Source: Macrostomum lignano
Lineage: Eukaryota
DNA: 64,000 nt
Direction of reading: 5' to 3'
Assembly: GCA_002269645.1 (NCBI GenBank)
Contig: NIVC01002421.1
Location: forward strand, 62,001 to 126,000
Below the pieces are notes generated by a model that saw nothing but the letters and a program-made list of their open reading frames with translations, searched no databases and was not told where the DNA came from. Below are positions 22,973 through 64,000 of this stretch, in pieces (position 1 is the stretch's first letter; each line of letters begins with the position of its first letter). Position numbers and translations under genes: made by a program.

Positions 22973-23458
22973 CATTTTTATTTCTTATCTTCAATAGAAA
23001 TTAAAGTCCATATGTAGATCCGGGTATAAGTATCCAATTTTAAAGATTAGAGGATTAGATTATTCCAAATACGGAAATTTCTTGACTAGCCCAGTGCCCT
23101 ACCCCAACCCAGCTGTGTCCTCTATCCGCCGTTTTCGCCGCTTCTACTAGGGGAAACTAACGACCAACCCAACTCGAGCCTCACCTCCCGCAACACTCAT
23201 TGACTTCTCAATTTATTGCCGTGTCAAAACAGAAATACAGGGAGGAGACAGTAAATCAGGCACTGAATGTTTTAAGGGGAGGGGAAACGCGCGCTTTTCG
23301 ATCTAAAAAAGTGAATATTTTTTCCTCCTTGGATTCCTTAAAACTTTTTCTTCCTAACGATTCCATTCCGAGAGAGAAACTGCGCAATGCAAATGGGTAA
23401 AGGACAGGCAGACCTGAGGCAAGAAGAGCAGCGCCTGGCACACTTTCATTTCGGGGAG

Positions 23459-24932
<1,474 letters not shown>

Positions 24933-26169
24933 ACAAACTGCTGCTGTTTGAACAGCAGGGGGGAGGCGGAGATCTCAAGGCGGAACCCCACGCATTTTGC
25001 CAAGTGGGTGCAGAGCTGCTCCGAGTCTGCATGGAAGCCAGCAGTGCGCGGAGGCTGACCGGATGTCCCGCCTAACCCGTTGGTCCTCCGGGATGAAGAC
25101 AGATGCACTTTGTACCCGTAAGCTGGCAGCTGGGGGGATGCAGTATTCTCATGGACCGCTGAGCACTGCTTTCTAAGCCTGAGTACAGAGACTGAGAGTG
25201 GAATACTGTTTTGTAGCTGGGTGAGCTGCCCTTGCAGGGCGATTCTGTATCACGTGACGCTCCTGAGTCTCGAATCGGCAACTCCTGACTCTCAAATCGG
25301 CAACTCCTGACTCTCAAATCGGCAACTCCTGACTCTCAAATCGGCAACTCCTGACTCTCAAATCGGCAACTCCTGACTCTCAAATCGGCAACTCCTGACT
25401 CTCAAATCGGGAACTCCTGACTCTCAAATCGGCAACTCCTGACTCTCAAATCGGCAACTCCTGACTCTCAAATCGGGAACTCCTGACTCTCAAATCGGCA
25501 ACTCCTGACTCTCAAATCGGGAACTCCTGACTCTCAAATCGGCAACTCCTGACTCTCAAATCGGGAACTCCTGACTCTCAAATCGGCAACTCCTGACTCT
25601 CAAATCGGCAACTCCTGACTCTCAAATCGGCAATTCCTGACTCACAAATCGACAACTCCTGACTCTCAAATCGGCAATTCCTGACTCACAAATCGACAAC
25701 TCCTGACTCTCAAATCGACAACTCCTGACCCTCAAATCGGCAATTCCTGACTCACAAATCGACAACTCCTGACTCTCAAATCGACAACTCCTGACCCTCC
25801 AATCGATTACTCGATTCATAAGAAAAAAAAGTAATTTTTTTATTTCAGTCTAATCTGGAATAAACATTGCAGGAAACTCAGTCGCCATTATATCAGCCGC
25901 TGCAATCGAAATTTTACAAGCCATCCGCCCGCATCGCTTTAGAAAAAAGTGCCTAGTGGGGGCAGACTTTGCAATGCAATTGCATTTTTATTGCTGCAGA
26001 ATAACGCGCTGCCACAATGCCAGATCTCTGAGCTAATTGTATCTCCGCAATGTCTGAGCCCCTCTTTACGAGGTAGGAAAATATTTTCATTGATCCAGTG
26101 CCGCATCTTCTCCAAACCCCCAGTTTGCCCCAACCCCATCTCTATTATCTGGTTTTGGCTCTAGACAGA

Positions 26170-27225
26170 CAGCTTTTCCCATTCTCTGACAGCTTGTCCC
26201 ATCCTCTGACCGCTTGTCCCATCCTCTGACAGCTTGTCCCATCCTCTGACAGCTTATCCCATCCTCTGACAGCTTGTCCCATCCTTTGACAGCTTGTCCC
26301 ATCCTCTGACAACTTTTCCCATCCTGTGACAGCTTGTCCCATCCTGTGACAGCTTGTCCCATCCTCTGACAGCTTATCCCATCCTCTGACAGCTTATCCC
26401 ATCCTCTGACCGCTTGTCCCATCCTCTGACCGCTTGTCCCATCCTCTGACAGCTTGTCCCATCCTCTGACAGCTTTTCCTATCCTCTGACAGCTTGTCCC
26501 ATCCTCTGACAGCTTGTCCCATCCTGTGACAGCTTTTCCCATCCTCTGACAACTTTTCCCATCCTGTAACAGCTTGTCCCATCCTCTGACAGCTTTTCCC
26601 ATCCTCTGACAGCTTGTCCCATCCTCTGACAGCTTGTCCCATCCTCTGACAGCTTGTCCCATCCTGTGACAGCTTGTCCCATCCTCTGACAGCTTGTCCC
26701 ATCCTCTGACAGCTTGTCCCATCCTCTGACAGCTTTTCCCATCCTCTGACAGCTTGTCCCATCCTGTGACAGCTTGTCCCATACTCTGACAGCTTGTCCC
26801 ATCCTGTGACAGCTTGTCCCATCCTCTGACAGCTTGTCCCATCCTCTGACAGCTTGTCCCATCCTCTGACAGCTTTTCCTATCCTCTGACAGCTTGTCCC
26901 ATCCTCTGACAGCTTGTCCCATCCTCTGACAGCTTGTCCCATCCTCTGACAGCTTATCCCATCCTCTGACAGCTTATCCCATCCTCTGACAGCTTGTCCC
27001 ATCCTTTGACAGCTTGTCCCATCCTCTGACAACTTTTCCCATCCTGTGACAGCTTGTCCCATCCTGTGACAGCTTGTCCCATCCTCTGACAGCTTATCCC
27101 ATCCTCTGACAGCTTATCCCATCCTCTGACAGCTTGTCCCATCCTCTGACAGCTTGTCCCATCCTCTGACAGCTTGTCCCATCCTCTGACAGCTTTTCCT
27201 ATCCTCTGACAGCTTGTTCAATTAT
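26170..27225. repeat. Minisatellite, 20-bp unit ATCCTCTGACAGCTTGTCCC
   Basis: Direct periodicity (exactly three units per 60-nt line). Confidence 0.97.
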
Positions 27226-27664: not shown

Positions 27665-28885
<1,221 letters not shown>

Positions 28886-29388
28886 ATTTGTCTGGAAGCT
28901 TCCCCTAAATGCTGCTCCTAGCCTGGAGACTTTTTTTGGAAGCGAAGCGACCTCCACTGCAGTTAAACAAGTCATTGTGCTTGCAGGTATTCAGTGTACT
29001 TTTTTAGTGTGTTGCCGCCGGCTTGTGACATGCATGAGTGGCGGTCAGACGGGCCGGACCTGTCAGCAGCTGAGCCAGCTCTGTTCACTGATGATGAGCT
29101 GGTAATGAGCGAGCAGCCAGCTGGTTCTCGGGTAACCGGGGGCAGCGGGGGGGGGGGGTTGAGAAGGAGCTCTCTCGGCTCTGAGCTCATCTTTCAGTCT
29201 CGGGGCTTCCATCGGCAATCTGACAAGCCCCCGGCGTGAGGATTTTGATAGAGGCTGGGAAAAAATGGGGGAGAGAGAGAGGAGGGTGAAATCTCCCCAG
29301 AAAAAGAGAATGCATGTTGCCTGTTGGTTTCTGCTTATAGAAGGCGAGGAGAGCCGTCCGTGCTACTCCTGCTGTTCTGCCACCCCAC

Positions 29389-34668: not shown

Positions 34669-37600
34669 CAAGGACTACTTAAGTAGAAGGACGCTGCACT
34701 CCCGAATGGTGTAGATTTTTTTGAAGGCCATTTTTCAAAATGCTGTTATTTTTAAATGGTTGCATGTAGAGGTCTAGTTTTTTCACGGGGTTGCTCAGAA
34801 TTTATTCCTCTTTTAGATGAGTGAACAGTTTCGGCTGCAACTACATGTATTCGCGAGAAATGTACAGCAAGGTACTGTTACCCCCTTCTTTATTATAGAA
34901 CAATAAAGCTAGGATATTTAAAGGATAATTCCGACAATTGAGCTAATGTAATCCAATTAAAATGAGATGAGATTAACAAAGAACGAAGCCCGTCAGTCTG
35001 TACTTTTCAAAAGCCATCCCTGATCTTTTCAACAATAAAATAACAAAGAGCAAAAGCAGAGAAACTGGCACAATGCCAGTGCTGATAACAATCGATGTAT
35101 CGTTGTTGGACTGGAAACAAAAAATGTTGAACTGAACTGGTTGCTTGTTGCACAGCAGCTCATTGTACTTTAATCTCAATTGATAGCTACAGTAAGGCAA
35201 ATATGTATGTAAGGCTGCAAATATAAGACTGTGTATAGTGTATAGTGTATAGAAACTGTGGCAACTATTGGGTAGGCAACAGCAGTAAAATGCAGAAACC
35301 AACTTATGAAAGCAGCAACAAATGTTTAAACCAACGTATGAAAGCAGCAACAGATGCATAAACCAACTTATGAAAGCATAAGCATATTCAATGACGTGAA
35401 TGTGAATTGGGTCTGTATAAAACATGGACAACCATGGACTATGGGTCAAATTACATGCTCAATCAATTAACAATGTTCGCTTCAATTCTACGAGCTATGT
35501 TGCCTCCGATTTTGGCTTATTGCATTTTTGGTTGGATATTTCGATATTTTCCAGTGTCCACTTCGTTTGTTTAAATTAGAGGTGTCTAAGTGTACAATGG
35601 GTGTTCAAGTTTTATACGAACTCGGTGTGTTGATAGAATGTCACGGATTTCTCAAAAAGCGTACAAACAGCTCATAACTAACTTGATGCTAACTTTCGCA
35701 GACGCCGTCCACTGCCGGGCGTCTCTCGTACATGGTCCGAATCACGACGCACGAGTCCTTTAAAAAATGTGTTAGCTAACCTCCTGGAAATGCGGCTAAC
35801 CTGAGCTGGATCTGAAACAGTTACATCCATGAAAGCTTCAAAAACGTTAATAAAAGATCGGACACAATAGTTGACGCAGTGGATCTTGACAGAGGAGAAA
35901 AAAGCATAGCACAGGCTGGAGAAAACTAAAAGCCACTCTGGCGGGTGCCGGAGCTTGCCACGAGATAGCAGCGATGTAAATTCGCTACCGCCAGGAAACT
36001 CAGTTGCAAATGCTTCAAAAACTTCTGGAAGATGCTCTTTAGCAGCAACGTAACCGGAAATATAGTACAAAGAAGCATTCTCCTCATCTGTATTGTGGCT
36101 GATCTTGTCTTGAAGCTGATCAAACACCTCTAGATCAGAGTCCTTCATCCCATCGGAACAGCATGTCGCCGGCTCATGAGCCTCAAAGCTGTTCTGAAGC
36201 GCTCCGTACAATTTCATTCGGTGCAGCCGAGCACTGGCCATAACTTGCTCGACTGTTATGTAGTAACACCCGCCGTGGCCCTGGCGGTAGAGAGCGAACT
36301 CGGCCTCCAATCTGTCTGATTGCAGTACACCTTAAAGACAATTTCGTGACCCATTAGATAGCCGTGACCTGCATCCCCACAATTCATTAAATTCATTCCC
36401 TAGCAACAATTATTCAAAAACTGATTGCTGCATGTAAATAATGCAAAGAACTCACCAAGAAGAACGTAAGAAAATCGATGGTTGGTTAGAAGGTGTCTGC
36501 TGAGGCCCACCAGACCTCTTGTTGTCTGGATTAAAGCGTTGCGCGTCTCTGTGGTGAGCGACCGACCGCGTCCCGCACCTCGTCCACCCGGCATGCGCTC
36601 CACCAGTGCGGAGAAATTAAGTAAATGTGTCAAGCTGCTAGATGAGTGAATCCGATCAGTCTCATTGAATGAGTCCATTTCATCAGCAATTTGAGCCCGC
36701 TGGTTTAACAGAATACCGCGGCGTTGAACATCTCTAGAGTGCTCTGAAGTAAGAATAATAATATGTAAGGTATGAAATCAGACAAAAACTTAATTAAGTA
36801 AAATATTATAGAAAGCCTATCATTTGGTACAAACTGTAATATTTAACCTTGCTATGAGATATACTTACTTGGCTCAGTCAGGCGAAGAGAGCCTGTTGGA
36901 AGATTTGGGAATACACTTGGTGGGTCCATAGGGCGCATGAATCGCTTGACCTTTAACATTGGTGCATTTGTTGGCCAATGTTTTTGGCAAATGCCCATGT
37001 ATTTAGATGGACTCTAAAACAGTAAGTATTATATCATATTGTACTAATGTTCCATTAGCATGTGAATTAAGCAAGACAAGAATATGCAATAGCAGCAATA
37101 GCACCATACCTTAACATTTGGTGGCAAAGCTCGGATCCACATGCTGTAGTCTTCTTTATCCTTTGGAAAGCTATACACTGTCACCTTCTCACCAGATTTG
37201 TAGTTACTTGTACACTTTGGAAGACAGCATTTCATTGGCATTGCAGAAATTCTGAAGCTAACAAAAAGAAATATATACAGCTTCTATACATTATATCTAG
37301 TAAAAAATTGCTACAATACTGTATTGCTTTTATCCCAACAGGCCAATATAATCAATTCTATACTAAATCACTTCAATAGTATTACTAAAGTTGAAAATTT
37401 GTCTTCTAAAGTCTATTATACGCATTTTCCTTTAGAATCACTTTCTATATATAAATATTTATATTTTAAATTCAATGCAAGGCCTGAGTATTGAATATAT
37501 CTTGGTTCCATTAAACTAGACTAGGTTAAAAAACTGCTCTCCAAACAGCAGAAATAAATTCAATATGTTGTTAGGCCTATCATTTAAATAAAATATAAAG

Positions 37601-41382: not shown

Positions 41383-44300
41383 TCAGGCAGACACGTGCCC
41401 GATGATGAGCATGAGGTCGCAGCTGGCCATGGGATCGTCGGCTGGCCGGCGCTCCATCACGGGATTCTGGCCGGCGAAGCCAACAAACCGGTAGACGTGG
41501 GCGCGGTCCTCGACGTCCTGCACCACCTCGCCGCCTAGGAAGGACTTGGCCTGGAAGCCGTGCTTATAGAAGCAGAGCAGGGAGTCGTCAAGGCACTGCA
41601 CGCTCTCGATGGTGAACTCGAACGACAGGGTGCCGAGCCGGTTGCCGGTGCGGCTGCGGACCAGCCCGGAGTCCAGGCGAAACTCCCGCGCCATGTTGCG
41701 GTAGCAGACGAGCACGAGGTTCAGGTCCAGTTGAGTGACGCTGGTCACCTCCACCTGCGGGTGAGGGTCCAGGCATTGTGGGCTGGTTGCTAAGGGAGCG
41801 GATCGTAGAGTAGCGGATTGTAGGGAAGGGGATTCTGGGGGAAGGGAGCGGATTGTAGGGAAGGGGATTCTGGGGGGCGGATTGTAGGGAAGGGGATTCT
41901 GGGTGGAGGGAGCGGATTGTAGAGCAGCGGATTCTGGGTGGAGGGAGCGGATTGTAGAGCAGCGGATTCTGGGTGGAGGGAGCGGATTGTAGAGCAGCGG
42001 ATTCTGGGTGGAGGGAGCGGATTGTAGAGCAGCAGATTCTGGGTGGAGGGAGCGGATTGTAGAGCAGCGGATTCTGGGTGGAGGGAGCGGATTGTAGAGC
42101 AGCGGATTCTGGGTGGAGGGAGCGGATTGTAGAGCAGCGGATTCTGGGTGGAGGGAGCGGATTGTAGAGTAGCGGAGAAGCAGATTCTGGGGGAAGGGAG
42201 CGGATTGTGATGGTAGAGAAGCGGATTCTGGGGGGGGGCGGATTGTAGCGGATTGTAGATGGAGCGGATTCTGGGGGGCGGATTGTAGCGGATTGTAGAT
42301 GGGGCGGATTCTGGGGGGCGGATTGTAGCGGATTGTAGATGGGGCGGATTCTGGGGGGCGGATTGTAGCGGATTGTAGATGGGGCGGATTGTAGCGGATT
42401 GTAGATGGGGCGGATTCTGGGGGGCGGATTGTAGCGGATTGTAGAGAAGCGGATTCTCGGGGGCGGATTGTAGCGGATTGTAGATGGGGCGGATTCTGGG
42501 GGGGCGGATTCTGGGTGGAGGGAGCGGATTCTGGGGGGAGGGAGCGGATTGTGATGGTAGAGAAGCGGATTCTGGGGGGGGGCGGATTGTAGCGGATTGT
42601 AGATGGGGCGGATTCTGGAGGGGCGGATTGTAGCGGATTGTAGATGGGGCAGATTCTGGGTGGAGGGAGCGGATTGTAGAGTAGCGGATTCTGGGGGGGG
42701 GCGGATTGTAGCGGATTGTAGATGGGGCGGATTGTAGATGGGGCGGATTGTAGATGGGGCGGATTCTGGGGGTGGGGCGGATTGTAGATGGGGCGGATTC
42801 TGGAGGAGGAAAGCCATTAACAAAGCAGACGAACAATTCGAATCATAAATAAGCCAGCCAGTGACCCCAGCTGACCTCTTCGTCCAGCGCGGTTTCATCG
42901 TTGGGCGACAGCTCGATCTGGCCGTCCAGCTTGTTGAGGTCCAGCAGGCGAAACCGGACACAGGCGTCGCTCCGGCCGCGCAGGACGCCGACACAGACGA
43001 AGGGCAGTTTGAAGCCGCTCCGAATGAGCAGCTCGAAGGTGAGCAGTGGCTGCGGCAGGTCCGGGCAGGGCAGCGATTTGAATTCTAGGAAAGTGCGCCT
43101 GGCGTTGTCCCACTGGAGCAGCAGCACGGACTGCGGCAGGGCGCAGGCCAGCCAGCGCTCGGCGGTCTCCGGGTGCTTCGCCGCCGACACCCGCATGCAG
43201 CCTTTGGTGCGGGGGATCTTCGCTGACGGCGGGTTGTTGGCCAGCCGCATGGCAACCCGGCCCTTGAGCTGGCGGGGTGCGGTGGGTCAGTTCTATGAGT
43301 CAGCTGATGGGTCAGTTGGTGGGTCAGCTGGTGGGTCAGTTCTATGAGTCAGCTGATGGGTCAGCTGGTGGGTCAGTTGGTGAGTGATTTGATGAGTCTG
43401 TTGTATGGTGGGTCAGTTAGTGGGTCAGCTGGTGGGTCATCTGGTGAGTCAGTTGGTGGGTCAGCTGGTGGGTCAGTTGGTGGGTCAGTTGGTGGGTCAT
43501 CTGGTGGGTCAGCTGGTGAGTCAGTTGGTGGGTCAGCTGGTGGGTCAGCTGGTGGGTCACTTCTATTATGGAACAGCTGACGGTTAGATTATTGACTCCC
43601 TAACCTATAAGCTGCATCAGAAGGGAGGCAAATTTCAAGATTTCTAAATACTCCAGATCCCAACATGTGAGGAACTCAAACCTTAGACTTGGCATCGGCA
43701 GGGAATAGCTGTGCCAGATCGTGCCTGTAGAGCTGAGGGTGCCGGCCAGAGAGGGACACCAGGATGCCGCGGTACACGAACAGCCAGAGGCAGCGCTGGC
43801 GCACCAGCAGCACCATGGTGGGGTCGTGCAGCTGGTCCAGGCTCATGTAGTACAGGCCTTCGTTGGCGCCCACGAACACCAGGTCGCAGCCGGCCGGGTT
43901 CGTCCACTTAGCAACTGCGTTGATTTTCAGCGGGCTGTCCTCGAATATCTGGCTCATGCCGGCGCCCATCTTGGTGGCTGGCCGCGGCGCTGGCGGTGTC
44001 TCCGCTGAGTCAGCAGCGGGCGCGTCAGCCCCGGGACCCGCAATGGACACCGGGCGAGGCCGTTTGTCGGCGGCCGCGCCAGCGCCGTTCAAGCGAGGCG
44101 GCGGCGGTCGCGCCGGCGGCGGATTTCGGCCAGCGTGAGAGCTGGTCCGCTGAGGCGGGGTGGGCGGTGGGCCCGGGTCGGCCGTCTCCGCTGCCAAACT
44201 GTCTCCAGACTGGGGTGGGTCGGTGTTGACGATGAGTCAATTGGCGGGTCAGACTGATCGATTGGTGGGTCAGACTGACTGATTGGTGGGTCAGACTGAT

Positions 44301-47300
44301 TGGTGGGTCAGACTGACTGATTGGTGAGTCAGACTGATCGATTGGTGGGTCAGACTGACTGATTGGTGGGTCAGACTGATTGGTGGGTCAGACTGACTGA
44401 TTGGCGGGTCAGACTGACTAATTGGTGGGTCAGACTGATTGGTGGGTCAGATTGATTGGTGGGTCAGAGATTATGAAAGCTCATCACACAGCCAACGAAA
44501 CTCACAGAATCAGCTGCTTGTTGGTCGTCGGTTCTGAAAGTAAGAAAAACCTTTCTGCTAGAAAGACGAAGTCGAAAACAGGAAATCTCAATCCAACCAG
44601 CAATAAAGGCGGGCAGAGGAGTGTCACACCTGGTGGGTCCGAGAATTTCGGCGCTAACTGGGCGCTTGGGTTTCGCGGGAGCGCCGGCGGAGGAGACGCC
44701 AGCAGCGGCGGGCGGCCGCTCCGATGTGGGGGTCGGCAGTCCTCTGCGGAGTTGCACCGTAAGAAATAACTTAAAATACTTTGTTTACTACTACAGCTGA
44801 ACAGTAGACAGTTAGTGAACAAAAATGAATCATGAAAAGGTAAAATAAATAATACTAGACTGTCAGCCAGCCAAAAGTCACAGATTTGCAACAAGCAAAT
44901 GACAGACTGTCAGGTGCAGACCACTATCTACTTGTAATAAATAAATGAATGATGCTGGAAAATGCTTAATGGACTGTGCAGCAGACAGCGGACACTTGGG
45001 CGTGTGTTGAACATAATGTGCTGCATCATATTAGACAAATTAGTACAACAGTTTAATACAATTGATAGCAGAAAAACAGCTTTTAGCTACAAATAACGGT
45101 ATTGATTGATTGATCTTAGATGCCATTCTTGACTTGCTGGTTTGGAATTTCCAAAGGCTGAGTTGGGATTTCCCATGGCTGGTTCGGGACCTCTAATGGC
45201 TGGTTCGGGATTTCCAATGGCTGAGTTGGGATTTCCAATGGCTGAGTTGGGATTTCCGATGGCTGGTTCAAGATTTCCAATGGCTGATTTGGGATTTCCA
45301 ATGGCTGATTTGGGATTTCCAATGGCTGATTTGGGATTTTCAATGGCTGAGTTGGGATTTCCAAAGGCTGATTTGGGATTTCCAATAGCTGAGTTGGGAT
45401 TTCCAATGGCTGGGTTGGGATTTCCAAAGGCTGATTTGGGGTTTTCAATGGCTGAGTTGGGATTTCCAAAGGCTGATTTGGGATTTCCAATGGCTGAGTT
45501 GGAATTTCCAATGGCTGGGTTGGGATTTCCAAAGGCTGATTTGGGATTTCCGATGGCTGATTTGGGATTTCCGATGGCTGATTTGGGATTTCCGATGGCT
45601 GATTTGGGATTTCCAAAGGCTGAGTTGGGATTTCCAAAGGCTGATTTGGGATTTCCAATGGCTGAGTTGGGATTTCCAATGGCTGAGTTGGGATTTCCAA
45701 AGGCTGGGTTGGGATTTCCAATGGCTGATTTGGGATTTCCGATGGCTGGATTGGGATTTCCAATGGCTGAGTTGAGATTTCCAAAGGCTGAGTTGGGATT
45801 TCCAAAGGCTGGGTTGGGATTTCCAATGGCTGATTTGGGATTTCCGATGGCTGGATTGGGATTTCCAATGGCTGAGTTGAGATTTCCAAAGGCTGAGTTG
45901 GGATTTCCAAAGGCTGATTTGGGATTTCCAATGGCTGATTTGGGATTTCCAATGGCTGAGTTGGGATTTCCAAAGGCTGGGTTGGGATTTCCAATGGCTG
46001 GGTTGGGATTTCCAATGGCTGATTTGGGATTTCCGATGGCTGGATTGGGATTTCCAATGGCTGAGTTGAGATTTCCAAAGGCTGAGTTGGGATTTCCAAA
46101 GGCTGGGTTGGGATTTCCAATGGCTGATTTGGGATTTCCGATGGCTGGATTGGGATTTCCAATGGCTGAGTTGAGATTTCCAAAGGCTGAGTTGGGATTT
46201 CCAAAGGCTGATTTGGGATTTCCAATGGCTGAGTTGGGATTTCCAATGGCTGATTTGGGATTTCCAAAGGCTGATTTGGGATTTCCAATGGCTGATTTGG
46301 GATTTCCAATGGCTGATTTGGGATTTCCAATGGCTGATTTGGGATTTCCAATGGCTGATTTGGGATTTCCAATGGCTGAGTTGGGATTTCCAATGGCTGA
46401 GTTGGGATTTCCAAAGGCTGGGTTGGGATTTCCAATGGCTGGGTTGGGATTTCCAATGGCTGAGTTGGGATTTCCAATGGCTGAGTTGGGATTTCCAATG
46501 GCTGAGTTGGGATTGCCGATTGGGATTTGCAAAAATAAACTTCGGGAACTGGCAGTATATTTAACAATGCACCATTCAGCAACGAAAAAGCAACTGACAG
46601 CGGCATGAAAATGATTCAACTAATCAATAACAGCCGGATTTACCTGTCCCGCAAGCAATTCTCAATATCCTGAAGCAAGTCGATGCTACAAGTGGGGTTG
46701 GGGGAGAGAGCGGCAGGCAAATCCTCTATTGATGCCAAATCTGTGCGTTTTTAAATGATTACGGTTCAATACAATACAATAATATAATAAAGTGATAGTT
46801 ATAATTATTGACAATTTAGTTTACTGCCGGGACAAAATGGGTAGCGCGCAGATGCCAGCTGCTTGGGTGTCATTTAGATACAAAAATGTGATTTGGCTCA
46901 ATTTTGCTATCGATTAAGCAGTGAAAAATAATAAACAAATCTCTAATGCAATATTAGACCTATTTGCTACGAAAACTGCATAGGGACAGACGACTGACCT
47001 TAGCAAGGGTCGGCTGAACAACTAAGCAACTGGTGTTATTTACCTTAGCAACCGGGCTGTTTATCCTAGCGACCGAGCTATTTACTTTAGCAACTGAGCC
47101 ATTTACACTAACAACCGAGCTATTTACCCTAGCAACCGAGCTTTCTATCCTAGAAACCGAGCTATTTATCCTAGCAACCGAGCTATTTACTCTAGCAACT
47201 GAGCCATTTATCCTAGCAACCGAGCTATTTACCCTAGCAACCGAGCTATTTACCCTAGCAACCGAGCTACTTAACCTAGCAACCGAGCTATTTAACCTAG

Positions 47301-50300
47301 CAACCGAGCTTTCTATCCTAGAAACCGAGATTTTTATCCTAGCAACCGAGCTATTTACCCTAGCAACCGAGCTATTTAACCTAGCAACCGAGCTTTCTAT
47401 CCTAGAAACCGAGATTTTTATCCTAGCAACCGAGCTATTTACCCTAGCAACCGAGCCATTTATCCTAGCAACCGAGCTTTTTATCCTAGCAACCGAGCTT
47501 TTTATCCCAGCAACCGAGCTTTTTATCCTAGCAACCGAGCGTCTTATCCCACCAGCCAGGCTAATTCTCTTAGCAACCGAGTCATTTATCCTAGCAACCG
47601 AGATGTCTAGTAACAAATTCACACTTTATTACTAATATAAATGAAAAAGTGTCTTAAATGAAAACAAAAACTTAAGATTTTTTGCATGCAACACGGGCAT
47701 CGCCAAAAAATATAATTACAAAATAACAACTCACTCATCAAGTTGTTGCGGCTGCTGCTGCGGCTGGCGAGACGGCGGTGGCTGCGGCGGCTTCACCGGC
47801 TCCCGGCCGGAGCACGCGGCCCACAGCTGCCCGTAGACTTCGTCATCGTCGTAGCCGCCGCTGGCCGCCTCCGCTGGTGCAGCCGGGGCCACTGCCGCCG
47901 GTCTGGGCGCCTGCGGCAAAGGCGGAGTTTTCTCGCCCGCCGGCTTCCGGCTGGGAATTCGGCTGGGAGGCAGCGGCGGGTTCGGCGCCGGCGCGCCGTC
48001 CTCTTCATCTTCTTCGTCTGGCGCCGCCGCGAGCAGCTCATCCAGCAGGCCGCGACCCTGTGGCGACGAAAAAAGGTCAGCGATGGGTCATTCCAATAGG
48101 TCAGTGATGGGTCATTCCAATAGGTCAGCGATGGGTCATTCCAATAGGTCAGCGATGGGTCATTCCAATAGGTCAGTGATGGGTCATTCAAATCGGTCAG
48201 CGATGGGTCATTCCAATAGGTCAGTGATGGGTCATTCAAATCGGTCAGCGATGGGTCATTCCAATAGGTCAGTGATGGGTCCTTCCAATAGGTCAGCGAT
48301 GGGTCATTCAAATAGGTCAGCGATGGGTCATTCAAATAGGTCAGCGATGGGTCATTCCAATAGGTCAGCGATGGGTCATTCAAATAGGTCAGTGATGGGT
48401 CATTCCAATAGGTCAGCGATGGGTCATTCAAATAGGTCAGCGATGGGTCATTCCAATAGGTCAGCGATGGGTCATTCCAATAGGTCAGCGATGGGTCATT
48501 CAAATAGGTCAGCGATGGGTCATTCCAATAGGTCAGCGATGGGTCATTCAAATAGGTCAGTGATGGGTCATTCCAATAGGTCAGCGATGGGTCATTCAAA
48601 TAGGGTCATTCAAATAGGTCAGTGATGGGTCATTCCAATAGGTCAGCGATGGGTCCTTCCAATAGGTCAGCGATGGGTCATTCAAATAGGTCACTGATGG
48701 GTCATTCCAATAGGTCAGCGATGGGTCATTCAAATAGGTCAGTGATGGGTCATTCCAATAGGTCAGCGATGGGTCATTCCAATAGGTCAGCGATGGGTCA
48801 TTCAAATAGGTCAGTGATGGGTCATTCCAATAGGTCAGCGATGGGTCATTCAAATAGGGTCATTCAAATGGGTCAGCGATGGGTCATTCAAATAGGGTCA
48901 TTCAAATGGGTCAGCGATGGGTCAATAACAGACCAGTAATGGGTCAGCGATGGGTCAATAACAGACCAGTAATGGGTCAGCGATGGGTCAATAACAGACT
49001 AGTAATTGGTTAGCGATGGGTCAATAACAGGCCAGTAATGGGTCAGCGATGGGTCAATAACAGACCAGTAATGGGTCAGCGATGGGTCAATAACAGGCCA
49101 GTAATGGGTCAGCAATGGGTCAATAGCAGGTTAGCGATGGGTCCCCAATAAATCACCTGATACCGCCGGCACTCGTCGTGAAACTGGCGCAGGAGAGTGA
49201 CCGTGAGGTGCTTGCCCAGTGCCGGGTTGGCCAGGAACTGGTGCTGAAGCAGGTCGTGAGCGGCTGGCCGGCTCTTGGGATTCAATCTTAGGGAAGTTTT
49301 GAGGAAATCGTGGAACACGCCGCCCCACATGGCTTTATCGCGCAGCTTAGGCGGCCTGTAGCGGCTGGTGGTCATGAGCTGCAGGGCCTTCATGGGGTGC
49401 AGGCTGAACATGGGCGGCTCCAGCTCGGCCAGCTCGATGGCGGTGATGCCGACCGCCCAGATGTCGCAGCGCTCGTCGTAGCCGCCTTTGCGGCGAACGT
49501 CGGCCACCTGAGGGCGAGCGGTGAGATGGGCGACGGCCATAACTAGAAAGGCTTGCCAATTTGTACAGGGGTTGCCAACTCCAATGTCAGGGGGTTGCCA
49601 ACTCCAATGTCAGGGGGTTGCCAACTCCAGTGTCAGGGGTTGCCAATTCTAATGTCAGGAGTAGCCAACTTCAGTGTCAGGGGTTGCCAATTCCAGTGTC
49701 AGGGGTTGCCAATTCCAGTGTCAGGGGTTGCCAATTCCAGTGTCAGGGGTTGCCAATTCCAGTGTCAGGGGTTGCCAATTCCAGTGTCAGGGGTTGCCAA
49801 TTCCAGTGTCAGGGGTTGCCAATTCCAGTGTCAGGGGGTTGCCAATTCCAGTGTCAGGGGTTGCCAATTCCAGTGTCAGGGGGTTGCCAATTCCAGTGTC
49901 AGGGGGTTGCCAATTCCAGTGTCAGGGGTTGCCAATTCCAGTGTCAGGGGGTTGCCAATTCCAGTGTCAGGGGGTTGCCAATTCCAGTGTCAGGGGTTGC
50001 CAATTCCAGTGTCAGGGGTTGCCAATTCCAGTGTCAGGGGGTTGCCAATTCCAGTGTCAGGGGGTTGCCAATTCCAGTGTCAGGGGGTTGCCAATTCCAG
50101 TGTCAGGGGTTGCCAATTCCAGTGTCAGGGGGTTGCCAATTCCAGTGTCAGGGGTTGCCAATTCTAGTGTCAGGGGGTTGCCAACTCCAGTGTCAGGGGG
50201 TTGCCAACTCCAGTGTCAGGGGGTTGCCAACTCCAGTGTCAGGGGGTTGCCAACTCCAGTGTCAGGGGGTTGCCAACTCCAGTGTCAGGGGGTTGCCAAC

Positions 50301-53300
50301 TCCAGTGTCAGGGGGTTGCCAATTCCAGTGTCAGGGGTCGCTATTCCAGTGTCAAAGCAAGCGCAGTCAAGCACCTCAGGCGCCATCCAGTAAGGCGTGC
50401 CAATGAAGGACATCCGCTTGCCCAGGGTGGCGGTGATCTGCGCGGAGATGCCGAAGTCAGCCAGCTTGACGCTGCCGTCCCTGGTCAGCAGGATGTTGGC
50501 GCCCTTGATGTCGCGGTGGATCTGCTGCTTGGCGTGCATGTGCACCAGGCCGCGGACGGTTTCGCGCATCACGAACGCGATGGTCGGCTCCTCGAATGGC
50601 CGCCTGGTGGTGGTGTAGATGTCCTGCAGCGATTTGCCGCCGCAGTACTCCATGGCGATCCACAGGTTCGTCTGGTTGAGCAGCCGGTTCTCGCTGCGGT
50701 TCGAAGGGTGTCAGGTATGGGACACTGAGGTGTCAGATTGCCTAATCGCATTACTGGGATTGGGATGTCAGATAGTCTGACCTATTGCAAAGATCGGGGT
50801 GTCAGATGGTCTGACCCATTGCAGGGATCGGGTGTCAGATTGTTTGACACATTGCAGGGATTGGGGTGTCAGATCGTTTGACACATTGCAGTGATCGGGG
50901 TGTCAGATTGTTTGACACATTGCAGGGATCGGGGTGTCAGATGGTCTGACACATTGCAGGGATCGGGTGTCAGATTGTTTGACACATTGCAGGGATTGGG
51001 GTGTCAGATGGTTTGACACATTGCAGTGATCGGGGTGTCAGATTGTTTGACACAGTGCAGGGATCGGGGTGTCAGATTGTTTGACACATTGCAGGGATCG
51101 GGGTGTCAGATGGTCTGACACATTGCAGGGATCGGGGTGTCAGATGGTCTGACACATTGCAGGGATCGGGGTGTCAGATGGTCTGACCTATTGCAGGGTG
51201 TCAGATGGTCTGACCTATTGCAGGGTGTCAGATGGCTGGATGCAGATGGCCAGTACAGACTCAAGAGCAGCTGTTCAAAAGCCAAACTCACGTGATGAAA
51301 GCGCCAAAGAACTCGACAATGTTGGCATGGTGGCAGTCTTTCAGCACAAACAGCTCAGTCAGAATTGCTTTTAGATCATCTGTTGGCTCGATCTTGACAC
51401 ACTTCAGCGCAGCATAGGTGCCAGTGGCCTTGTGCTTTGCCTATAGTTTGGTTCAATAGAAAATGCTGCTATTGAAGAAATAGTTAATGATATCAACAAT
51501 AGTTGAACTACTTCAAATACCATAAATTTAATGTCTTATTTTTGTATTTTGCATGCTTTCTAAAACCAAAACCAGTACAATATAATATTAACAATCCCAA
51601 CTAACTATACCAAACAATTTTTGACAAACATTCTTTTAAATTAATTATACAAAAAACTGTTTTATTGAAAAACTCATAAATGCTTTATTACAGAAATAGT
51701 AAATTCTATAATTTTTTAACATTTTCAACATTTTTTCAAAGGTTTATTTGTTTATCACTTTGTTACTATTGACAATATATATACTTTTAGAGTTGTCTGC
51801 AATAAAAACTGTATTCAATATAAGTTCATTATTAAATATATATGAATTCCCATTGGGATCAAAAATCACAATTTTAGCTTCTACAAAACCAATTTAGAAA
51901 ATTCTTTCCTGCATATATATTGTAATAATATGTTTATTATATATACATAAATATATACACATTTAAGTATATTTTAATTGTTCTTTGTTGCTTAATAAGC
52001 CTACCAGAAGCCTTTGATTTAGATGCCAGGTTGGTTAGATAAGTTGTAGAATAAATTAGCCTTTTTGAGGCCTTTAAGTCTTAAAACTAATTGTTTATTT
52101 TAAAAAAATAAAAAAACAATTGCAAAGTAGTCAATCTAGACTTTAAAAAAATCTTATTTTGCTTTTTACTCATTTATTTAATGATTTTCAATATAATAGT
52201 TTTTAGATTATCAAGAACTATTTTTAGAGATTTTATGTCTTTCAAAAGCTTTTTTTGATATATTATCTTCACTCAAATGTCTGCAGATTTTTTAAATCAT
52301 TTTATCCTACATTCTTTTGCCCCATATTATAAACAAATATCTATCATAAAGAAATTAGGATTAGGATATATATTTAAAGAAAAATAAAACAAATATTAAT
52401 AAAAAAAACAAGTATAGATATAGATTAAATTGCATCTAAAATATAAATATTCTTATAAGGCGAAATCCAAAAACGTGGGATAAAACGGTAAAACAAATCT
52501 GCGGACATTCGATGGAAAGTAATGTATCTAAAAAAGGTTTTTGAAAGATAGATAGGTCTTTAGAAAATAGTTCTGGATAATAACTATTGTTTTCATGTTT
52601 TATATTGTTGAATAAATAAGAAAAAACCACAAAAAAGCATTTTGAAAGTCCGAGTTGACCAATTTGCAATTTTTTGTTTCACTTTTTTTCATTATTAAAC
52701 AATTAATTTTAAGACTTGTAGGCCTTAGAGAAGGCTAATTTTTTTACTACTTACAAAACAGAAAGTAATTTGTGTTTTACTTTTTATTCAATTCAAAAAT
52801 ATGAAGTATTTCTAAGGATTTCAAAGTTTTTCTAAAACCATATAAACTCGCGAAAATTCATACTAATATAAAATGCAAAGTTTGCCAGCAAACATCTTTC
52901 TCTAAAAGTAAATATATCGCTAATTCCTTGTTGCAAAATAATCTTTAAGTTGTTTTCTTTCATTTAAATATCAACTTGCATAGCATTAGTATTTGTAATA
53001 TGCCTATATTTAGACTTAAAAATTTTGGGTAAAAAATGGTACCACAAAATGTGAACCCGGCATCCAAATCAGATGCTTACTGTATGCTCATTAAGCGACG
53101 AAGAACAATGAAATTACACTAAAACATGTATCATCCCGGCGTGTATGCAGGAAAAAAAGAATTTTCCAAAGCTTTAGTAGAAGCTGAGTAAAATGCAATT
53201 TTCCAATCCTTATGGGAATTCCAATGTGTTACCCGGCTTCCAAATCAGATGCTTACTGTATGCTCATTAAGCGACGAAGAACAATGAAATTACACTAAAA

Positions 53301-58594: not shown

Positions 58595-58940
58595 TTCGCT
58601 TTGATTAGCAATCCATTCTATTCCTGCACCCATGATAGGATAGATTAGCAATCCATTCTATTCCTGCACCCATGATAGGCTAGATTAGCAATCCATTCTA
58701 TTCCTGCACCCATGATAGGCTAGATTAGCAATCCATTCTATTCCTGCATCCATGATAGGCTAGATTAGCAATCCATTCTATTCCTGCATCCATGATAGGC
58801 TAGATTAGCAATCCATTCTATTCCTGCATCCATAATAGGCTAGATTAGCAATACATTCTATTCCTGCACCCATGATAGGCTAGATTAGCAATCCATTCTA
58901 TTCCTGCACCCATGATAGGCTAGATTAGCAATCCATGCTA
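58595..58940. repeat. Minisatellite, 40-bp unit GATTAGCAATCCATTCTATTCCTGCACCCATGATAGGCTA
   Basis: Direct, ~8.5 copies. Confidence 0.95.
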
Positions 58941-59231
58941 TTATGAACCCTCGAATTTCTTATCCACAATCGTAGAGCTGTAAAGTCCTTAGAATCTGGT
59001 TTAAATAATTCAGTACCAGAGCCGCAAGCGTTAGCAACCAATCTGAAATTCAGAGCGGCCTGGCAAACTGCATCTGATTTACAAGTCAATCGCGAATCGA
59101 TAAAAAAACTCCAGATGGCTCCGGCCAGTTGAAAAGCGCTGCGCTTGTTTACAGATAAGCGCCGCCAGATTAGAGAGGGGGAGTGACAGAGTGAGAGATA
59201 AGCCGCTGAAGCACCGGAGGCTCAGCGCAGC

Positions 59232-60090
59232 TCAGGCCAAGCCCTTGAACGAATTCGAAGCTCTGGGGGTGGCCGCCGCCGGCCCGGCGAACCACCAGCT
59301 GTGCACGTCTAGCGGATACGAGCTGTCGTCGTCGTCGTGGAATGTCGAGGACACGTCCACGGAGCAGACGGGCAGCCAGCCGCGCCGCATGAAGAGGTCC
59401 AGCACGCACAGCATCAGCTGCCTGCCGTGGCCGGCCATGCCGCTCTTGCCGCTGCCCCAAGGCGACTGGCGCAGCCGCAGCTCCAAGTAAGACGGCCGCT
59501 CGCGAGTCTCCTCCACGCCGAACTGGTAGCTCTGCTTCACCAGCTCCGTGGTGGCCTGCTGAAGGTCCGACGGCACCTGCAGCAGCCACAGCCGGTTGGC
59601 GCTGACCGGAGCCACGCAGCAGTGCGGCCGCTCCTCGCAGGGACCGCGCACGAACACCAGCGTGGCCTGAGGGGCGCGGGAGCGTTGGGAAAATATGATC
59701 CTCCCAGGGAAGTTCCACAATCCCCAAAGTTTTCAACCCCAAATGAACCCTAAAACTTCACAATCTCCTACGTTACAATCCCAAAACTCCTTTGAAAGAA
59801 CCCCAGGCACTCTACGCTCTGCAGCTCTCACCTTGTCGTTGGACCGGCGAGCCAGCTCGACAGCGCTCAGCAGTCGCCAGCCCTTGCTGCGCAGGGCGGC
59901 CAGCAGCCCCATCACCAGCAGCCTGGCGTGCGCGCTCTCCTCCCCGATGCAGTACCACGGGCTGCCCTTCAGCTGCAGCGCCATGAAGCTGCAGTCAGCG
60001 CTGCCGCCCGTGACACCGCTGCGGGACACTCCCGGCCGCCACAGCTGCGACACCTTTGAGGAGGGAGGGGCAAGGGTTAGAGACAGGTGG

Positions 60091-60137
<47 letters not shown>

Positions 60138-61715
60138 CCTTATGAATGATGTACTCCTGTGTGTTAGTCTGCGCGCCAATCACAGTCAGCATATCTTTGC
60201 CCTTCAGGCTAACAGCGAACGTCTGGTTGGTGAGGAACGGCTGCGGCAGCTCAACCTTCTCAGCCACGTGCTGGAAGAACAGGCAGCAGTCGGTGTCCTT
60301 GGTGTGCGTGGCCAGCAGCAGCTGCCAGCCGAGGCCGGTGGCTTCCCGGACGATCTGCACCAGCAGCTGCCGAGCCCTGGCTGACACGTCACCGATGACG
60401 GCAGTCCAGGGCGCGCCGTCCAGCTCGAACTGGTAGCAGCCCTCCGTGCAGATGCGGCAGTTGGGCCACAGAGCCTGCGGCCAGGTGAATGTTTAATGGC
60501 AATGAGTACAGAGTCACTGGCGACTAGGGGGACTTGGGAGTTCCTAGAAGAAGCGGTTGACCCACTGAGGAGATCAGGATGAAGCGGTTGACCCACTGAG
60601 GAGATCAGGATGAAGCGGTTGATCCACTGAGGAGATCAGGATGAAGCGGTTGATCCACTGAGGAGATCAGGATGAAGCGGTTGATCCACTGAGGAGATCA
60701 GGATGAAGCGGTTGATCCACTGAGGAGATCAGGATGAAGCGGTTGATCCACTGAGGAGATCAGGATGAAGCGATTGATCCACTGAGGAGATCAAGATGAA
60801 GCGGTTGATCCACTAAGAAGCTCAAGATGAACCGGTTAACCCACCGAGAAGCTCAAGATGAAGCGGTTGAACCATGCACTGAGGAGATCAGGATGAAGCG
60901 GTTGACACCCACTGAAGAGATCAGGATGAAGTGCATGGTTTACCCATGCACTGAGGAGATCAGGATGAAGCGGTTGACCCACTAAGAAGCTCAAGATGAA
61001 ACGGTTGACCCACTGAGGAGATCAGGATGAAGCGGTTGACCCATGCACTGAGGAGCTCAGGATGAAGCGGTTGAGCCACTGATGAGCTCAAAACTTTGAA
61101 GCGACCATTCGAAGAATTTAGAACAGCAGAGCACCAGAATGGGAAACACAGACGCCAAACCAGAGCTGGGGAGCTGCATCAATCAGAGCAGGCCAGATGA
61201 CTTGCCTGGACGCAGCGTTGGATGGCCTGAATCAGCGGGTTGTCGCATTCGATAAGCTGCAGCAGGCAGCCGTCACTGAATGCCACGCAGGCGACCGGAC
61301 CGTCGCACGGAGGAGCGGCGGATGCGGCAGCGGCGGCACCGGCCGCTGAGCCGGTGGCGAAGCACAGCGAGGATACCTCGTACTTGCGACAGAGGTCGGT
61401 GGCCACCACAGGCTGGAAGCCGGTCGACAGCAGGTGGCGCAGCAGGACACAGAGAAGCCGCTTGGCGGCCACGCCGGCCTCCTGGCCGCTGTCGGCGTGG
61501 AACGGCGCATCGTTGAGGTGGAAGATGCGCAGGTCGTGCGGGTAGGCGGACTCGTGCTTGACGCCATTGTCATACTCTTTGTTGACGAGGCTGTTCAGCT
61601 GCCGGCCCAGCTCGCTGCCCGCGTTCAGCACCAACAGCTGATTGGATGAGCGCATGGTGATGGAGAACAGACTCTCGGGAGTTGATCGAATGGGCGCGCT
61701 CAGTTCGTTGCCCAT
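59232..61715 (-). CDS. Uncharacterised four-repeat protein (~500 aa), probable N-myristoylation; exons 61206-61715, 60139-60474, 59832-60053, 59232-59666
   Basis: GC3-rich, stop-free exons join in phase 0 (first intron GC-AG, the others GT-AG). The N-terminus MGNELS fits MGxxxS. Four ~100-115-aa repeats share LxxxP[WF]...[AG][RK]xL[LM]...G[WF]x[LP][LV]. Confidence 0.8.
60090..60136. repeat. Short (CAGA)n tract filling an 85-nt intron
   Basis: Direct. Confidence 0.9.
60545..61090. repeat. Minisatellite, 31-bp unit ACTGAGGAGATCAGGATGAAGCGGTTGATCC, in the GC-AG intron
   Basis: Direct. Confidence 0.93.
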
Positions 61716-64000
61716 TTGTCAGCTGCAGTGGTTCAGGTTCAAGTCTTTTTGAAGAATTTGACATCTATCTGACAAAGCAACTAAATGGCATGTCACTGAT
61801 GGTCATTCAGAGTCTTTTCACGAATTGTCTATACTGGTTTGGCATTAAAAAGAGCACCAATCTTTAAATTTGTTAGCAATGTATTAGAGAAGCTCTTGCA
61901 TGTCTATATAGGCCCTATAGTGAAGAGTATAGAAAATAAACTAAAAGTTCAGTTTCAGAATTTTTATGTATTTTTTTTTTTAAAAAGCTTTCACTTTTCT
62001 AATCTATATACTAAAAATGGTCTGTCTGTGCTTATACATCTATGTGATTAGTTAGAGAAAAAAAGCCCTCAACCGATTTTCTTCAAACATCCCTAAAAAT
62101 TATGAGTATATTAGTGAAAATACAAAAATTCAATACTTTGCCTACAAGCCTGCAGGCATTCATTGCATACTGCGTTAATTTGAAAGTTTTTTTACATAAT
62201 TTAATTTACATGCATAATTTACATAAAGCCTAAAGAAAATGTTAGAGAAAAAGTGATAGTTTTCATAGAAGAAACATTTTCAGGTAAAAAAATATGTATT
62301 GCTTTCTAAAATATTTTAAAATCACATTCCTCTAGCTGCACCACAAAAGCATAATACGTGTAACACATATGACATAGAAAGGAGCCTTTTGCAATAGAAT
62401 TTTACTAATTGACATTACATGCAAAAACTTGTTACAATTTTGATGGTGAGTAGCTTCTCTATAGAGATATACTAGGCCTATTTTTAGATTTTTTGAAGTA
62501 CAATGCTGCTGGTAATAAAAATTGATCTAAATAGAAAAGTATAGACTGAAGTTTTATAAAAGCACTTGAAAAATTAAGCACACAAAACACATTGATAAAC
62601 CCACGACATAGAAAACCAGGCTCCACTAGCTAAACTGTAGGGTTAGAATAGTTAAACAGCCGCTAAAAATATCTCGTCGATTTTTACGAAATCAAATATA
62701 TTTTATTGATAATATCAAGGCTAGCAGAACTTTTTAAAATATATGCTTCTTATTATAGTCCTAATAGTTAATGTTAACGCTTAGTTATTTATTTAAAAAA
62801 GTCTGAAGCACGTTGTATTTTCTTTAGACTTTCTTAATCTTGCTTTAATATCGTTATTCAAAAAAGCTTCTTTTTGTTATTTAAACTTCTCTCATTGCTC
62901 ACTGCAGTTCTTCTTGCTTCGCTGGACACGATTAGCCTGACTTTAGTGGGTACTGTATTTTATATTGTATTGTTATTGGGATCATACTTTAAAATTAGTA
63001 TTTTAGTGAGATATTATGCACAATTGATTTATTATTACTGTTTTGAAATAGGCCGATTAATATTAATTTTATTTTGCAATTGCCTTTTTAGTGACTACAC
63101 TAGTCAAGAACACTAGTCATTATTACTCCCAAATACTCGTCTACCTTCTTATTTAAATTTTTCTTCTGTATTTAAAAAAAACTGACAACTATCTTAGACC
63201 AGTACAAGAATCATGTTAATTAAGGAATAGTAAGTAATTTTTTAATTTGTTTTTGTCTTGATTGTACTAGACATATTCCTAATCTGCATGTGATTGACAT
63301 TGGCTTTATTTAATCTTTTATGCTTTTTAGTATCATGTCTAAAAATTTGCCACAAATAAAGTTTTTTTTCCTAAAAATCATTAAGTAGAACTTTTTATTA
63401 GGCCTTAGTTTTAATCAATGCTTAATTGGAATAAGCATTATCTAACTAAAAATTTGAGTAATATAAGTTAAAAAATATTTAAAGGCAGTTGTTATTGTTA
63501 AAAGGACCATAAATAGCAAGGTGGTTATTTTTATGGTCAGCATATAAAACAAATATTATCTAAATTAAATAACAAACTTGCAATGCAAATAAAATAATAA
63601 AAGATAATTAAATTTTTAAAAACAAGAAACATTTTTTTCGATTTGAAAATGACAAAATTACAAATTTATCTATGATTTATTTATGACATTAATGGTAGAA
63701 CTACCAAGAAGGGGAGTTCAACAATTTTTTTGCTGCACTAGAGTAGAGCAACACAGGCGCATGAAATTCAAGAACACGAGTTAAGTTTTTGTTGTACACC
63801 TTTTCAAACAAGAATCAAGTTGCCAGCCCTCCAGACCATCAATATATTTGATGATTCTGCCAGGTTGGATTTTTCCTTTAAGCACCAGTGTATTTAGTAT
63901 ATCCCCTGGGTTTTTTTCACCAGAGACAAGGTGCGAAATCGCACCTTGTGCCAAATTTCAAGGTGCAATTTTAAGGCTCAGAGTGCAATTTCTCTTGAGT

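Follow-up and report, generated by a model that had tools for sequence, protein, structure and literature searches.

A four-repeat protein of the flatworm Macrostomum lignano with a predicted lipid tether and a likely remote kinship to the kinetoplastid protein Q4D6Q6

The 64,000-nucleotide (nt) stretch of Macrostomum lignano DNA analysed here (contig NIVC01002421.1 of assembly GCA_002269645.1, positions 62,001 to 126,000), which we call the window and whose positions serve as coordinates throughout, carries on its minus strand a four-exon gene for a protein of 500 amino acids (aa) composed of four related alpha/beta domains. The interval of this gene had been proposed earlier from the letters of the window (hereafter the original prediction) and it is exact: the ATG occupies 61715-61713, and 59234-59232 are the TGA stop codon. 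The coding sequence (CDS) was built by reading the three frames of the minus strand between 59100 and 61800 and splicing together four open segments whose borders are consensus splice sites. The spliced CDS is 1503 nt long, and its product starts with MGNELS and ends with SFKGLA (Table 1). The donor of intron 1 is of the non-canonical GC type (CAG/GCAAGT, 61200-61206, minus strand), and this junction is required by the deposited protein. The predicted product matches, with 100% identity from end to end, a public M. lignano protein retrieved in a search of cluster representatives and named 'hypothetical protein BOX15_Mlig032350g1 / Mlig012229g2' (PAA53345.1, PAA86591.1). The gene is already deposited as a hypothetical protein; its architecture and its link to the kinetoplastid protein Q4D6Q6 are undescribed as far as the searchable literature shows.

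The identical protein is encoded on two contigs of GCA_002269645.1. The CDS of the window copy differs from those of the two GenBank copies at 8 and 9 positions, and every one of these substitutions is synonymous. The synonymous share of the possible single changes in this CDS is 25%, which gives a P of ~1.5e-5 for 8 synonymous changes out of 8. Because all CDS differences between the copies are synonymous, the protein is under purifying selection, and the gene is not an artefact of the repeat-rich region in which it lies. The G+C content at third codon positions (GC3) is 0.87, similar to that of the neighbouring exons. Intron 1 is 731, 880 and 977 nt long in the three copies, and the source of this variation is the copy number of a 31-nt tandem array inside the intron (60550-61090 in the window, 16.9 copies, 86% matches). 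Intron 2 contains a (GACA)12 tract at 60090-60137.

The original prediction had described four alpha/beta repeats of about 110 aa, marked by the motifs FHLNDAPF, FELDGAPW, LQLKGSPW and LRLRQSPW, each preceded by a beta-beta-helix segment with a W/YxxG-like end. All four motifs are present, and they mark four homologous units with a length of ~105-120 aa. BLASTP among the four segments of the single protein gives E-values of 2e-8 to 0.05. Profiles of the individual repeats, obtained by cutting an alignment of 61 relatives at the repeat boundaries, align with each other in hhalign with probabilities of 99.7-99.9% and E-values of 1e-26 to 1e-35 over 95-108 columns. The family consensus of the unit begins with CISLN..DkLRLIn.P, which is followed by a helix ending in W..GiQ.E and by ..EFKL.G.PW, and continues with the helix R.L...lL..L...GW,.l..S.D.S.k..DKS.l.F being its last part. 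The W..GiQ.E of this consensus and the secondary structure assigned by DSSP to the model described below agree with the beta-beta-helix segment proposed ahead of each motif. Introns 1 and 2, both of phase 0 (junctions 61206/60474 and 60139/60053), cut repeats 2 and 3 at near-equivalent sites, located 2 and 4 residues, respectively, before the W of the W..G motif. This placement may be a trace of the duplication of an intron-bearing unit, or may result from intron sliding.

Table 1. Features of the four-repeat gene and its 5' flank, in window coordinates.
Feature	Position	Strand	Basis or remark
Complete CDS, ATG to TGA	59232..61715	-	Gene model; product identical to M. lignano PAA53345.1/PAA86591.1
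Exon 1, aa 1-170: MGNELS, repeat 1, Ala-rich linker, start of repeat 2	61206..61715	-	Gene model
Intron 1, 731 nt, phase 0, GC-AG, donor GCAAGT	60475..61205	-	Gene model
Exon 2, aa 171-282: remainder of repeat 2, start of repeat 3	60139..60474	-	Gene model
Intron 2, 85 nt, phase 0, GT-AG	60054..60138	-	Gene model
Exon 3, aa 283-356: core of repeat 3	59832..60053	-	Gene model
Intron 3, 165 nt, phase 0, GT-AG	59667..59831	-	Gene model
Exon 4, aa 357-500 and TGA: last strand of repeat 3, repeat 4 with P.DVHSWWF motif, disordered tail	59232..59666	-	Gene model
Repeat 1, aa 12-125, Q4D6Q6-like bb-a-bb-a-bb domain	61341..61682	-	hhalign, DSSP of model
Repeat 2, aa 138-243, split by intron 1	60256..61304	-	hhalign, DSSP of model
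Repeat 3, aa 253-366, split by introns 2 and 3, most canonical copy	59637..60228	-	hhalign, models, Foldseek
Repeat 4, aa 368-488, insertion ahead of last strand	59271..59633	-	hhalign, DSSP of model
Candidate spliced-leader trans-splice or 5' untranslated region acceptor, CTGCAG	61723..61728	-	Ends 7 nt upstream of ATG; fits [T/C]TNCAG

Scans of the M. lignano protein against Pfam and NCBIfam detect no family even at E<=1, which agrees with the earlier statement that no domain could be named. A phmmer search with the same protein against the PDB sequences gives nothing significant, and a Pfam scan of the Q4D6Q6 orthologues also finds no family. Scanning of 61 relatives against Pfam yields only marginal matches to DUF4177, in 3 of the 61 and with a best E of 7e-4. 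DUF4177 is a short bacterial domain that covers about half of the repeat length. It resembles the repeat in its helix-GW-strand motif; however, the M. lignano protein itself is not matched at E<=1, and the literature on DUF4177 offers nothing informative.

The full-length AlphaFold2 model, calculated with the 61-sequence alignment, has a mean score of 90.8 in the predicted local distance difference test (pLDDT) and a predicted template modelling score (pTM) of 0.91. Each repeat in the model consists of strand-strand-helix-strand-strand-helix-strand-strand, as assigned by DSSP. Because the pTM is high, the four domains are predicted to be held in one fixed compact arrangement. The C-terminal tail is short and disordered (pLDDT <50 from residue 493). 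Repeat 3 modelled alone with AlphaFold2, using an alignment of 45 repeats, reaches a pLDDT of 92.8 and a pTM of 0.86. When the whole model is compared with the PDB using Foldseek, there is one meaningful domain-level match, namely Q4D6Q6 of Trypanosoma cruzi (6XYB/6XYD; probability 0.99-1.00, target-normalised template modelling (TM) score 0.59-0.67). With a single repeat as query, the top eight matches are eight Q4D6Q6 chains from the same two entries (E 8e-5 to 3e-4, probability 1.00), which superpose with TM scores of 0.56-0.63 in both normalisations over ~114 columns, that is, the whole domain. The second-best structural group comprises chains of the T. brucei mitoribosomal small-subunit assemblosome (E 6e-4 to 2e-3, TMq 0.41-0.51). 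These are several paralogous chains (FQ-FU in PDB 6sga, FQ-FS in 9hny) and may represent another kinetoplastid use of a related fold. RNA-polymerase subunit L/Rpb11, the H1 domain of KCTD12, and KCTD1 appear further down the list, and a library of viral structures gives no match below E 1e-3.

Q4D6Q6 and its T. brucei orthologue Q586B2 (Tb927.6.4140) have a bbabbabb topology and form a propeller-like homotetramer; four paralogues are present per kinetoplastid genome, and the family, published as 'conserved kinetoplastid-specific', has been stated to have no homologues outside Trypanosomatidae and Bodonidae (PMC10899635). Kinetoplastid proteins were screened for an amino-terminal proline in the same study, in which Q586B2 is reported to have tautomerase activity, to be vesicular and to overlap in part with RAB5B and RAB11 endosomes, with glycosomes and with acidocalcisomes, and to be released and induce IL-10 in host myeloid cells (PMC10899635). 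Q586B2 is a virulence factor of T. brucei and has been proposed as a vaccine or drug target.

For sequence comparison with the repeats, the kinetoplastid set consisted of six orthologues (P0193-P0198) of 115-116 aa, all starting with MPNLCVS and representing one of the four paralogues. Alignment of this set by hhalign against each positional repeat profile gives probabilities of 86-92% (P 5.7e-7 to 4.7e-6), and against a merged profile of 228 repeats 93.5% (P 2.3e-7); under relaxed settings the alignment extends to 104 columns, nearly end to end. In the controls, the reversed repeat alignment gives a P of 0.035, 30 column shuffles give P of at least 0.016 and 30 shuffles of 10-column blocks give P of at least 7e-5, although a few of these control values may be re-reads of earlier output. 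When the 150 best family members are scored with a hidden Markov model (HMM) built from the six kinetoplastid proteins, 55 exceed every one of 1,500 shuffled decoys of matched composition; the top real protein reaches 29.8 bits and the top decoy 12.1 bits. In a search of all PDB sequences at E<=10 with the single-repeat profile, 6XYB is the only match, and with the family profile it is the top but non-significant match. Position-specific HMMs applied to the kinetoplastid protein show no clear preference between repeats 1 and 4 (R1 and R4). Since the profile tests, the identical topology and the full-length superposition all agree, it is likely that the repeat domain is homologous to the Q4D6Q6/Q586B2 protomer. 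The statement that this family has no homologues outside trypanosomatids and bodonids is contradicted at the level of remote homology.

The domains of both groups are ~110-116 aa long with bb-a-bb-a-bb topology, and share the landmarks C[IV]S in the first strand and K/S.lFF in the final strand. The NP..W loop and the EGW.LrAS segment of the kinetoplastid proteins have G.PW and GW.l..S as their counterparts in the repeats. Four-fold organisation is achieved by homotetramer formation in Q4D6Q6 and by four tandem repeats in the M. lignano protein, and association with membranes or vesicles is reported for Q586B2 and predicted for the M. lignano protein. However, the kinetoplastid proteins are single-domain protomers of 115-116 aa whereas the four repeats of the flatworm protein are fused and diverged. 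The kinetoplastid proteins also start with Met-Pro instead of a Met-Gly myristoylation motif and are without the PPxY motifs found in relatives of the flatworm protein (see below). Moreover, the action of released Q586B2 on host myeloid cells is not expected to have a counterpart in a free-living flatworm. As the M. lignano protein starts with MGNELS and has no free N-terminal proline, we treat it as a distant relative and an architectural variant of the Q4D6Q6 family and not as an orthologue.

A search of 1.84 billion cluster representatives (50% identity) retrieved 466 relatives with an E-value of 1e-3 or below, of which 188 reach 1e-10 or below. A further homologue search, started from the family alignment, gave the M. 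lignano protein alone. The family has members in cnidarians (Rhopilema, Actinia), nematodes (Anisakis, Steinernema, Plectus), arthropods (the copepod Lepeophtheirus and the springtail Orchesella), fungi (Linnemannia, Mortierella, Vanrija) and protists (the oomycete Thraustotheca, the alveolate Perkinsus and the diplonemid Lacrimia), in agreement with the original prediction, which had named fungi, scattered invertebrates and protists. Many further members lie on short metagenome, metatranscriptome or sequencing-run contigs, and M. lignano itself has at least three diverged paralogue lineages with 29-31% identity. None of the members whose names were looked up has an informative annotation, and no cluster from a standard model organism is among the 30 looked up, a possible reason why the family escaped study. 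Names of cluster mates such as Fucose-1-phosphate guanylyltransferase, HET, RNase H, Mediator 13 and Reverse transcriptase were discarded as cluster-naming noise, because no such Pfam domain is present in the 61 aligned relatives, including the Anisakis 'Mediator 13' and the Macrostomum 'RNase H'. In a Thraustotheca clavata protein of 1863 aa (P0128), two N-terminal repeats are followed by a full ABC transporter (ABC_membrane and ABC_tran), an arrangement due either to a genuine fusion or to the merging of gene models.

The number of repeats was counted in the 150 best relatives with a single-repeat HMM. Four repeats were found in 76 proteins (median 512 aa), two in 37 (median 255 aa), three in 26, many of which look like fragments, one in 12 and eight in a single Perkinsus protein of 1038 aa. 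Taken with the kinetoplastid proteins, which are tetramers of a single domain, the series 1, 2, 4, 8 fits what is expected if the functional unit has four domains. The position-specific profiles show divergence among the four repeats, and position-specific HMMs applied to held-out four-repeat proteins recover the right position of the repeat in 20-25 of 28 cases. As the repeats keep their position-specific identity, the four-repeat architecture is older than the divergence of these taxa. Two-repeat proteins resemble R3 plus R4 in the same analysis.

The N-terminus of the M. lignano protein, MGNELSA, fits the PROSITE pattern PS00008, G-{EDRKHPFYW}-x(2)-[STAGCN]-{P}. The first repeat is complete in 63 four-repeat proteins; 42 of these start with MG and 39 match PS00008, while an N-terminus of this type is found in 1 of 23 two-repeat proteins. 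The myristoylated N-terminus of the original prediction is thus matched by the pattern and conserved in complete four-repeat relatives, and the N-terminal glycine of the M. lignano protein is probably N-myristoylated, judging from this motif. Some relatives have a Cys at position 3 (MGC...), which suggests that they may be dually acylated. A second type of motif, PPxY, is present in 51 of the 150 best relatives, nearly always in the short N-terminal leads and C-terminal tails. Its density is 5.5-5.9 per 1000 residues in the termini versus 0.07 within the repeats, an ~80-fold difference. The usual form is PPPSY[DE] at the extreme C-terminus, and the M. lignano paralogue P0014 ends in ...PPSYDS.... 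PPxY-bearing members include the M. lignano paralogue Mlig031305 and the Actinia orthologue. PPxY is a ligand of the WW domains of the Nedd4 family, and membrane adaptors of Nedd4/Rsp5 ligases that carry PPxY include NDFIP1/2 and the ARRDC/ART proteins. Many members of the repeat family resemble these adaptors in pairing a membrane tether (MGxxxS) with a terminal PPxY. However, the adaptors have an unrelated fold, and transmembrane helices or arrestin domains take the place of the lipid tether predicted for the repeat family.

Taking these observations together, we favour, with moderate confidence, the interpretation that the gene is functional and encodes a membrane-tethered, single-chain pseudo-tetrameric docking scaffold. 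Four Q4D6Q6-like domains in one chain of this cytosolic 500-aa protein would reproduce the Q4D6Q6 homotetramer. The pseudo-symmetric, oligomer-like architecture of the original prediction is in line with the four repeats of the compact model and with the tetrameric state of the Q4D6Q6 relative. The N-terminal myristate would tether this rigid platform reversibly to the cytoplasmic face of a membrane, probably the endosomal or plasma membrane, where it would dock partner proteins. Fusion of the subunits may have let the four faces of the platform diverge. In about one third of the relatives, the terminal PPxY would recruit Nedd4-type WW-domain ubiquitin ligases, and the M. lignano copy, which is without this motif, may act as a bare platform or represent a diverged paralogue.

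Several points weigh against the scaffold interpretation. The case for myristoylation is the motif. No second membrane signal is found near the N-terminus of the M. lignano protein, where Cys is absent and the sequence is not polybasic, and therefore stable membrane binding is uncertain. Neither PPxY nor LPxY occurs in the protein. The proposed pseudo-tetramer geometry is based on the pTM and on analogy. Identity between Q4D6Q6 and the repeats is only 12-20%, E-values of the HMM against the PDB are 0.4-1.2, and the kinetoplastid alignment is shallow (6 orthologues, effective sequence number, Neff, 1.5). Transcript, proteomic and localisation data for the M. lignano gene were not found, and a literature search found no paper citing its gene IDs.

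The repeats might instead be related to the pentamer-forming H1 domains of GFRP and KCTD type, in which case the protein would regulate a partner enzyme or a G-protein subunit. A ring-forming fold of this kind had been proposed in the original prediction, and the resemblance is genuine at the level of the fold: a single repeat matches the H1 domain of KCTD12 (6qzl_E) with an E of 0.035, a probability of 0.98 and TM scores of 0.50/0.60, it matches KCTD1 (9foi) with a probability of 0.89-0.93, and a Pandoravirus BTB/POZ protein (E 2e-3) heads the matches in the viral library. KCTD H1 and GFRP are likewise small two-layer alpha/beta domains that form cyclic oligomers and serve as protein-binding regulatory platforms. 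However, the closest fold is the Q4D6Q6 protomer, whose E-value (8e-5) is 100-400 times better, whose match covers the full length and for which there is support from sequence profiles, whereas no sequence-level signal was seen for the H1 group. KCTDs carry a BTB domain, and neither this nor any other Pfam domain is present in the M. lignano protein at E<=1. The repeat numbers 1, 2, 4 and 8 suit a tetramer and not a pentamer, and since Q4D6Q6 forms tetramers, it matches the four repeats better than the pentameric GFRP/KCTD rings do. We therefore consider membership in the GFRP/KCTD-H1 group improbable; kinship at the level of a shared ancient fold may be true.

We find it very improbable that the four-repeat protein is an enzyme like Q586B2, that is, a membrane-bound tautomerase or isomerase. 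In tautomerases of the MIF/4-OT type, the free Pro1 is the catalytic residue. The homology to Q4D6Q6/Q586B2 and the activity reported for Q586B2 (PMC10899635) would agree with an enzymatic role, but all six kinetoplastid orthologues start with Met-Pro whereas the family of the M. lignano protein starts with MG, has its repeats in internal positions and offers no free N-terminal proline. Because the activity is associated with this proline, which is absent in the MG-initiated repeat proteins, its carry-over to them is unlikely on the evidence of their sequences. Hardly any weight can be given to the view that the sequence was acquired laterally or is non-functional, for example an artefactual open reading frame (ORF) in a repeat-rich region. 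The named taxa are patchy and include no standard model organism among the clusters looked up, a close-relative search seeded with a Steinernema member gave 10 named matches that are all from Steinernema (plus 2 unnamed ones), and the locus lies amid minisatellites. However, the gene has three phase-0 spliceosomal introns, a GC3 like that of neighbouring exons and several diverged paralogues, its copies differ synonymously only, and the 466 representatives extend across Metazoa, Fungi, SAR and Euglenozoa with repeat positions that are orthologous across taxa. The horizontal distribution considered possible in the original prediction is accordingly not borne out. Given its breadth (at least four supergroups), introns, host-like codons and paralogues, the family looks like an old one with many losses rather than one spread by horizontal transfer.

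Upstream of the gene, the acceptor predicted 7 nt before the ATG is present as CTGCAG and fits [T/C]TNCAG, a motif enriched at the spliced-leader trans-splice acceptors of M. lignano (PMC8629364). Its use as such an acceptor is plausible from the sequence. In M. lignano, ~30% of the genes receive by trans-splicing a 35-nt leader whose last letters are ATG (PMC8629364), and if the putative acceptor is used, this leader ATG would be out of frame with the ATG of MGNELS. A 40-nt tandem array (58603-58942, 8.5 copies, 97% matches) lies ~300 nt beyond the stop codon, within the likely 3' untranslated region or immediately past it. On the GenBank contigs (regions L001 13961-14719, L002 13608-14612 and L002 1-4467), the downstream neighbour of the gene is a kinase with Pkinase and CNH domains, and a phosphatidylinositol transfer protein (IP_trans) is encoded upstream of it on one of them.

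The window as a whole is unusually rich in tandem repeats. Kilobase-scale tetranucleotide arrays of GACA/TGTC type with endless 'SVCL' ORFs are located at 23354-25032 and 27676-29105; they are oppositely oriented, flank the region of 25-27.7 kb and have extreme AT skews of +0.91 and -0.88. Long minisatellites are present at 3834-4779, 26087-27062, 41588-42994, 45087-46619, 46960-47635, 47793-48599 and 49553-50406, and the minisatellite arrays yield spurious repetitive ORFs of 200-500 aa on both strands. An exon-sized ORF at 1441-2250 (minus strand) contains a 6-phosphogluconolactonase/glucosamine-6-phosphate isomerase domain (PF01182, E 3e-59). The intervals 14358-15383 and 15415-16191 (plus strand) encode the end of a protein kinase domain (C-terminal part; PF00069, E 6e-13), which looks MAPK-like by eye, and after it a long low-complexity, repeat-rich tail. 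A 210-aa ORF at 35678-36310 (minus strand; MEAEFALYRQGHGG...) has no Pfam match and may be a fragment of a mobile-element protein.

A fold and an architecture can now be proposed for an unstudied family of at least 466 cluster representatives, in which the repeat numbers 1, 2, 4 and 8 lead one to expect tetramers, dimers and monomers. If the scaffold interpretation of the M. lignano protein is true, the family is a clean natural example of a homo-oligomer turned into a single chain of tandem repeats, and the combination of a myristoyl tether with PPxY suggests a new class of ubiquitin-ligase adaptors. A more far-reaching scenario, which we put forward tentatively and think rather doubtful, is that Q4D6Q6/Q586B2 branched off, as single-domain proteins, from an ancient family that spans the eukaryotes and consists of lipid-anchored proteins in which the homotetramer became hard-wired into chains of 2, 4 and 8 repeats. 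The ancestral protein would have been a PPxY-bearing platform recruiting Nedd4-type ligases for endosomal sorting, and the family would be an unrecognised class of adaptors that was lost from vertebrates, flies, C. elegans and yeast. Such a non-parasitic housekeeping ancestry, if true, would alter the view of the 'moonlighting' immune function of Q586B2 and of its specificity as a target.

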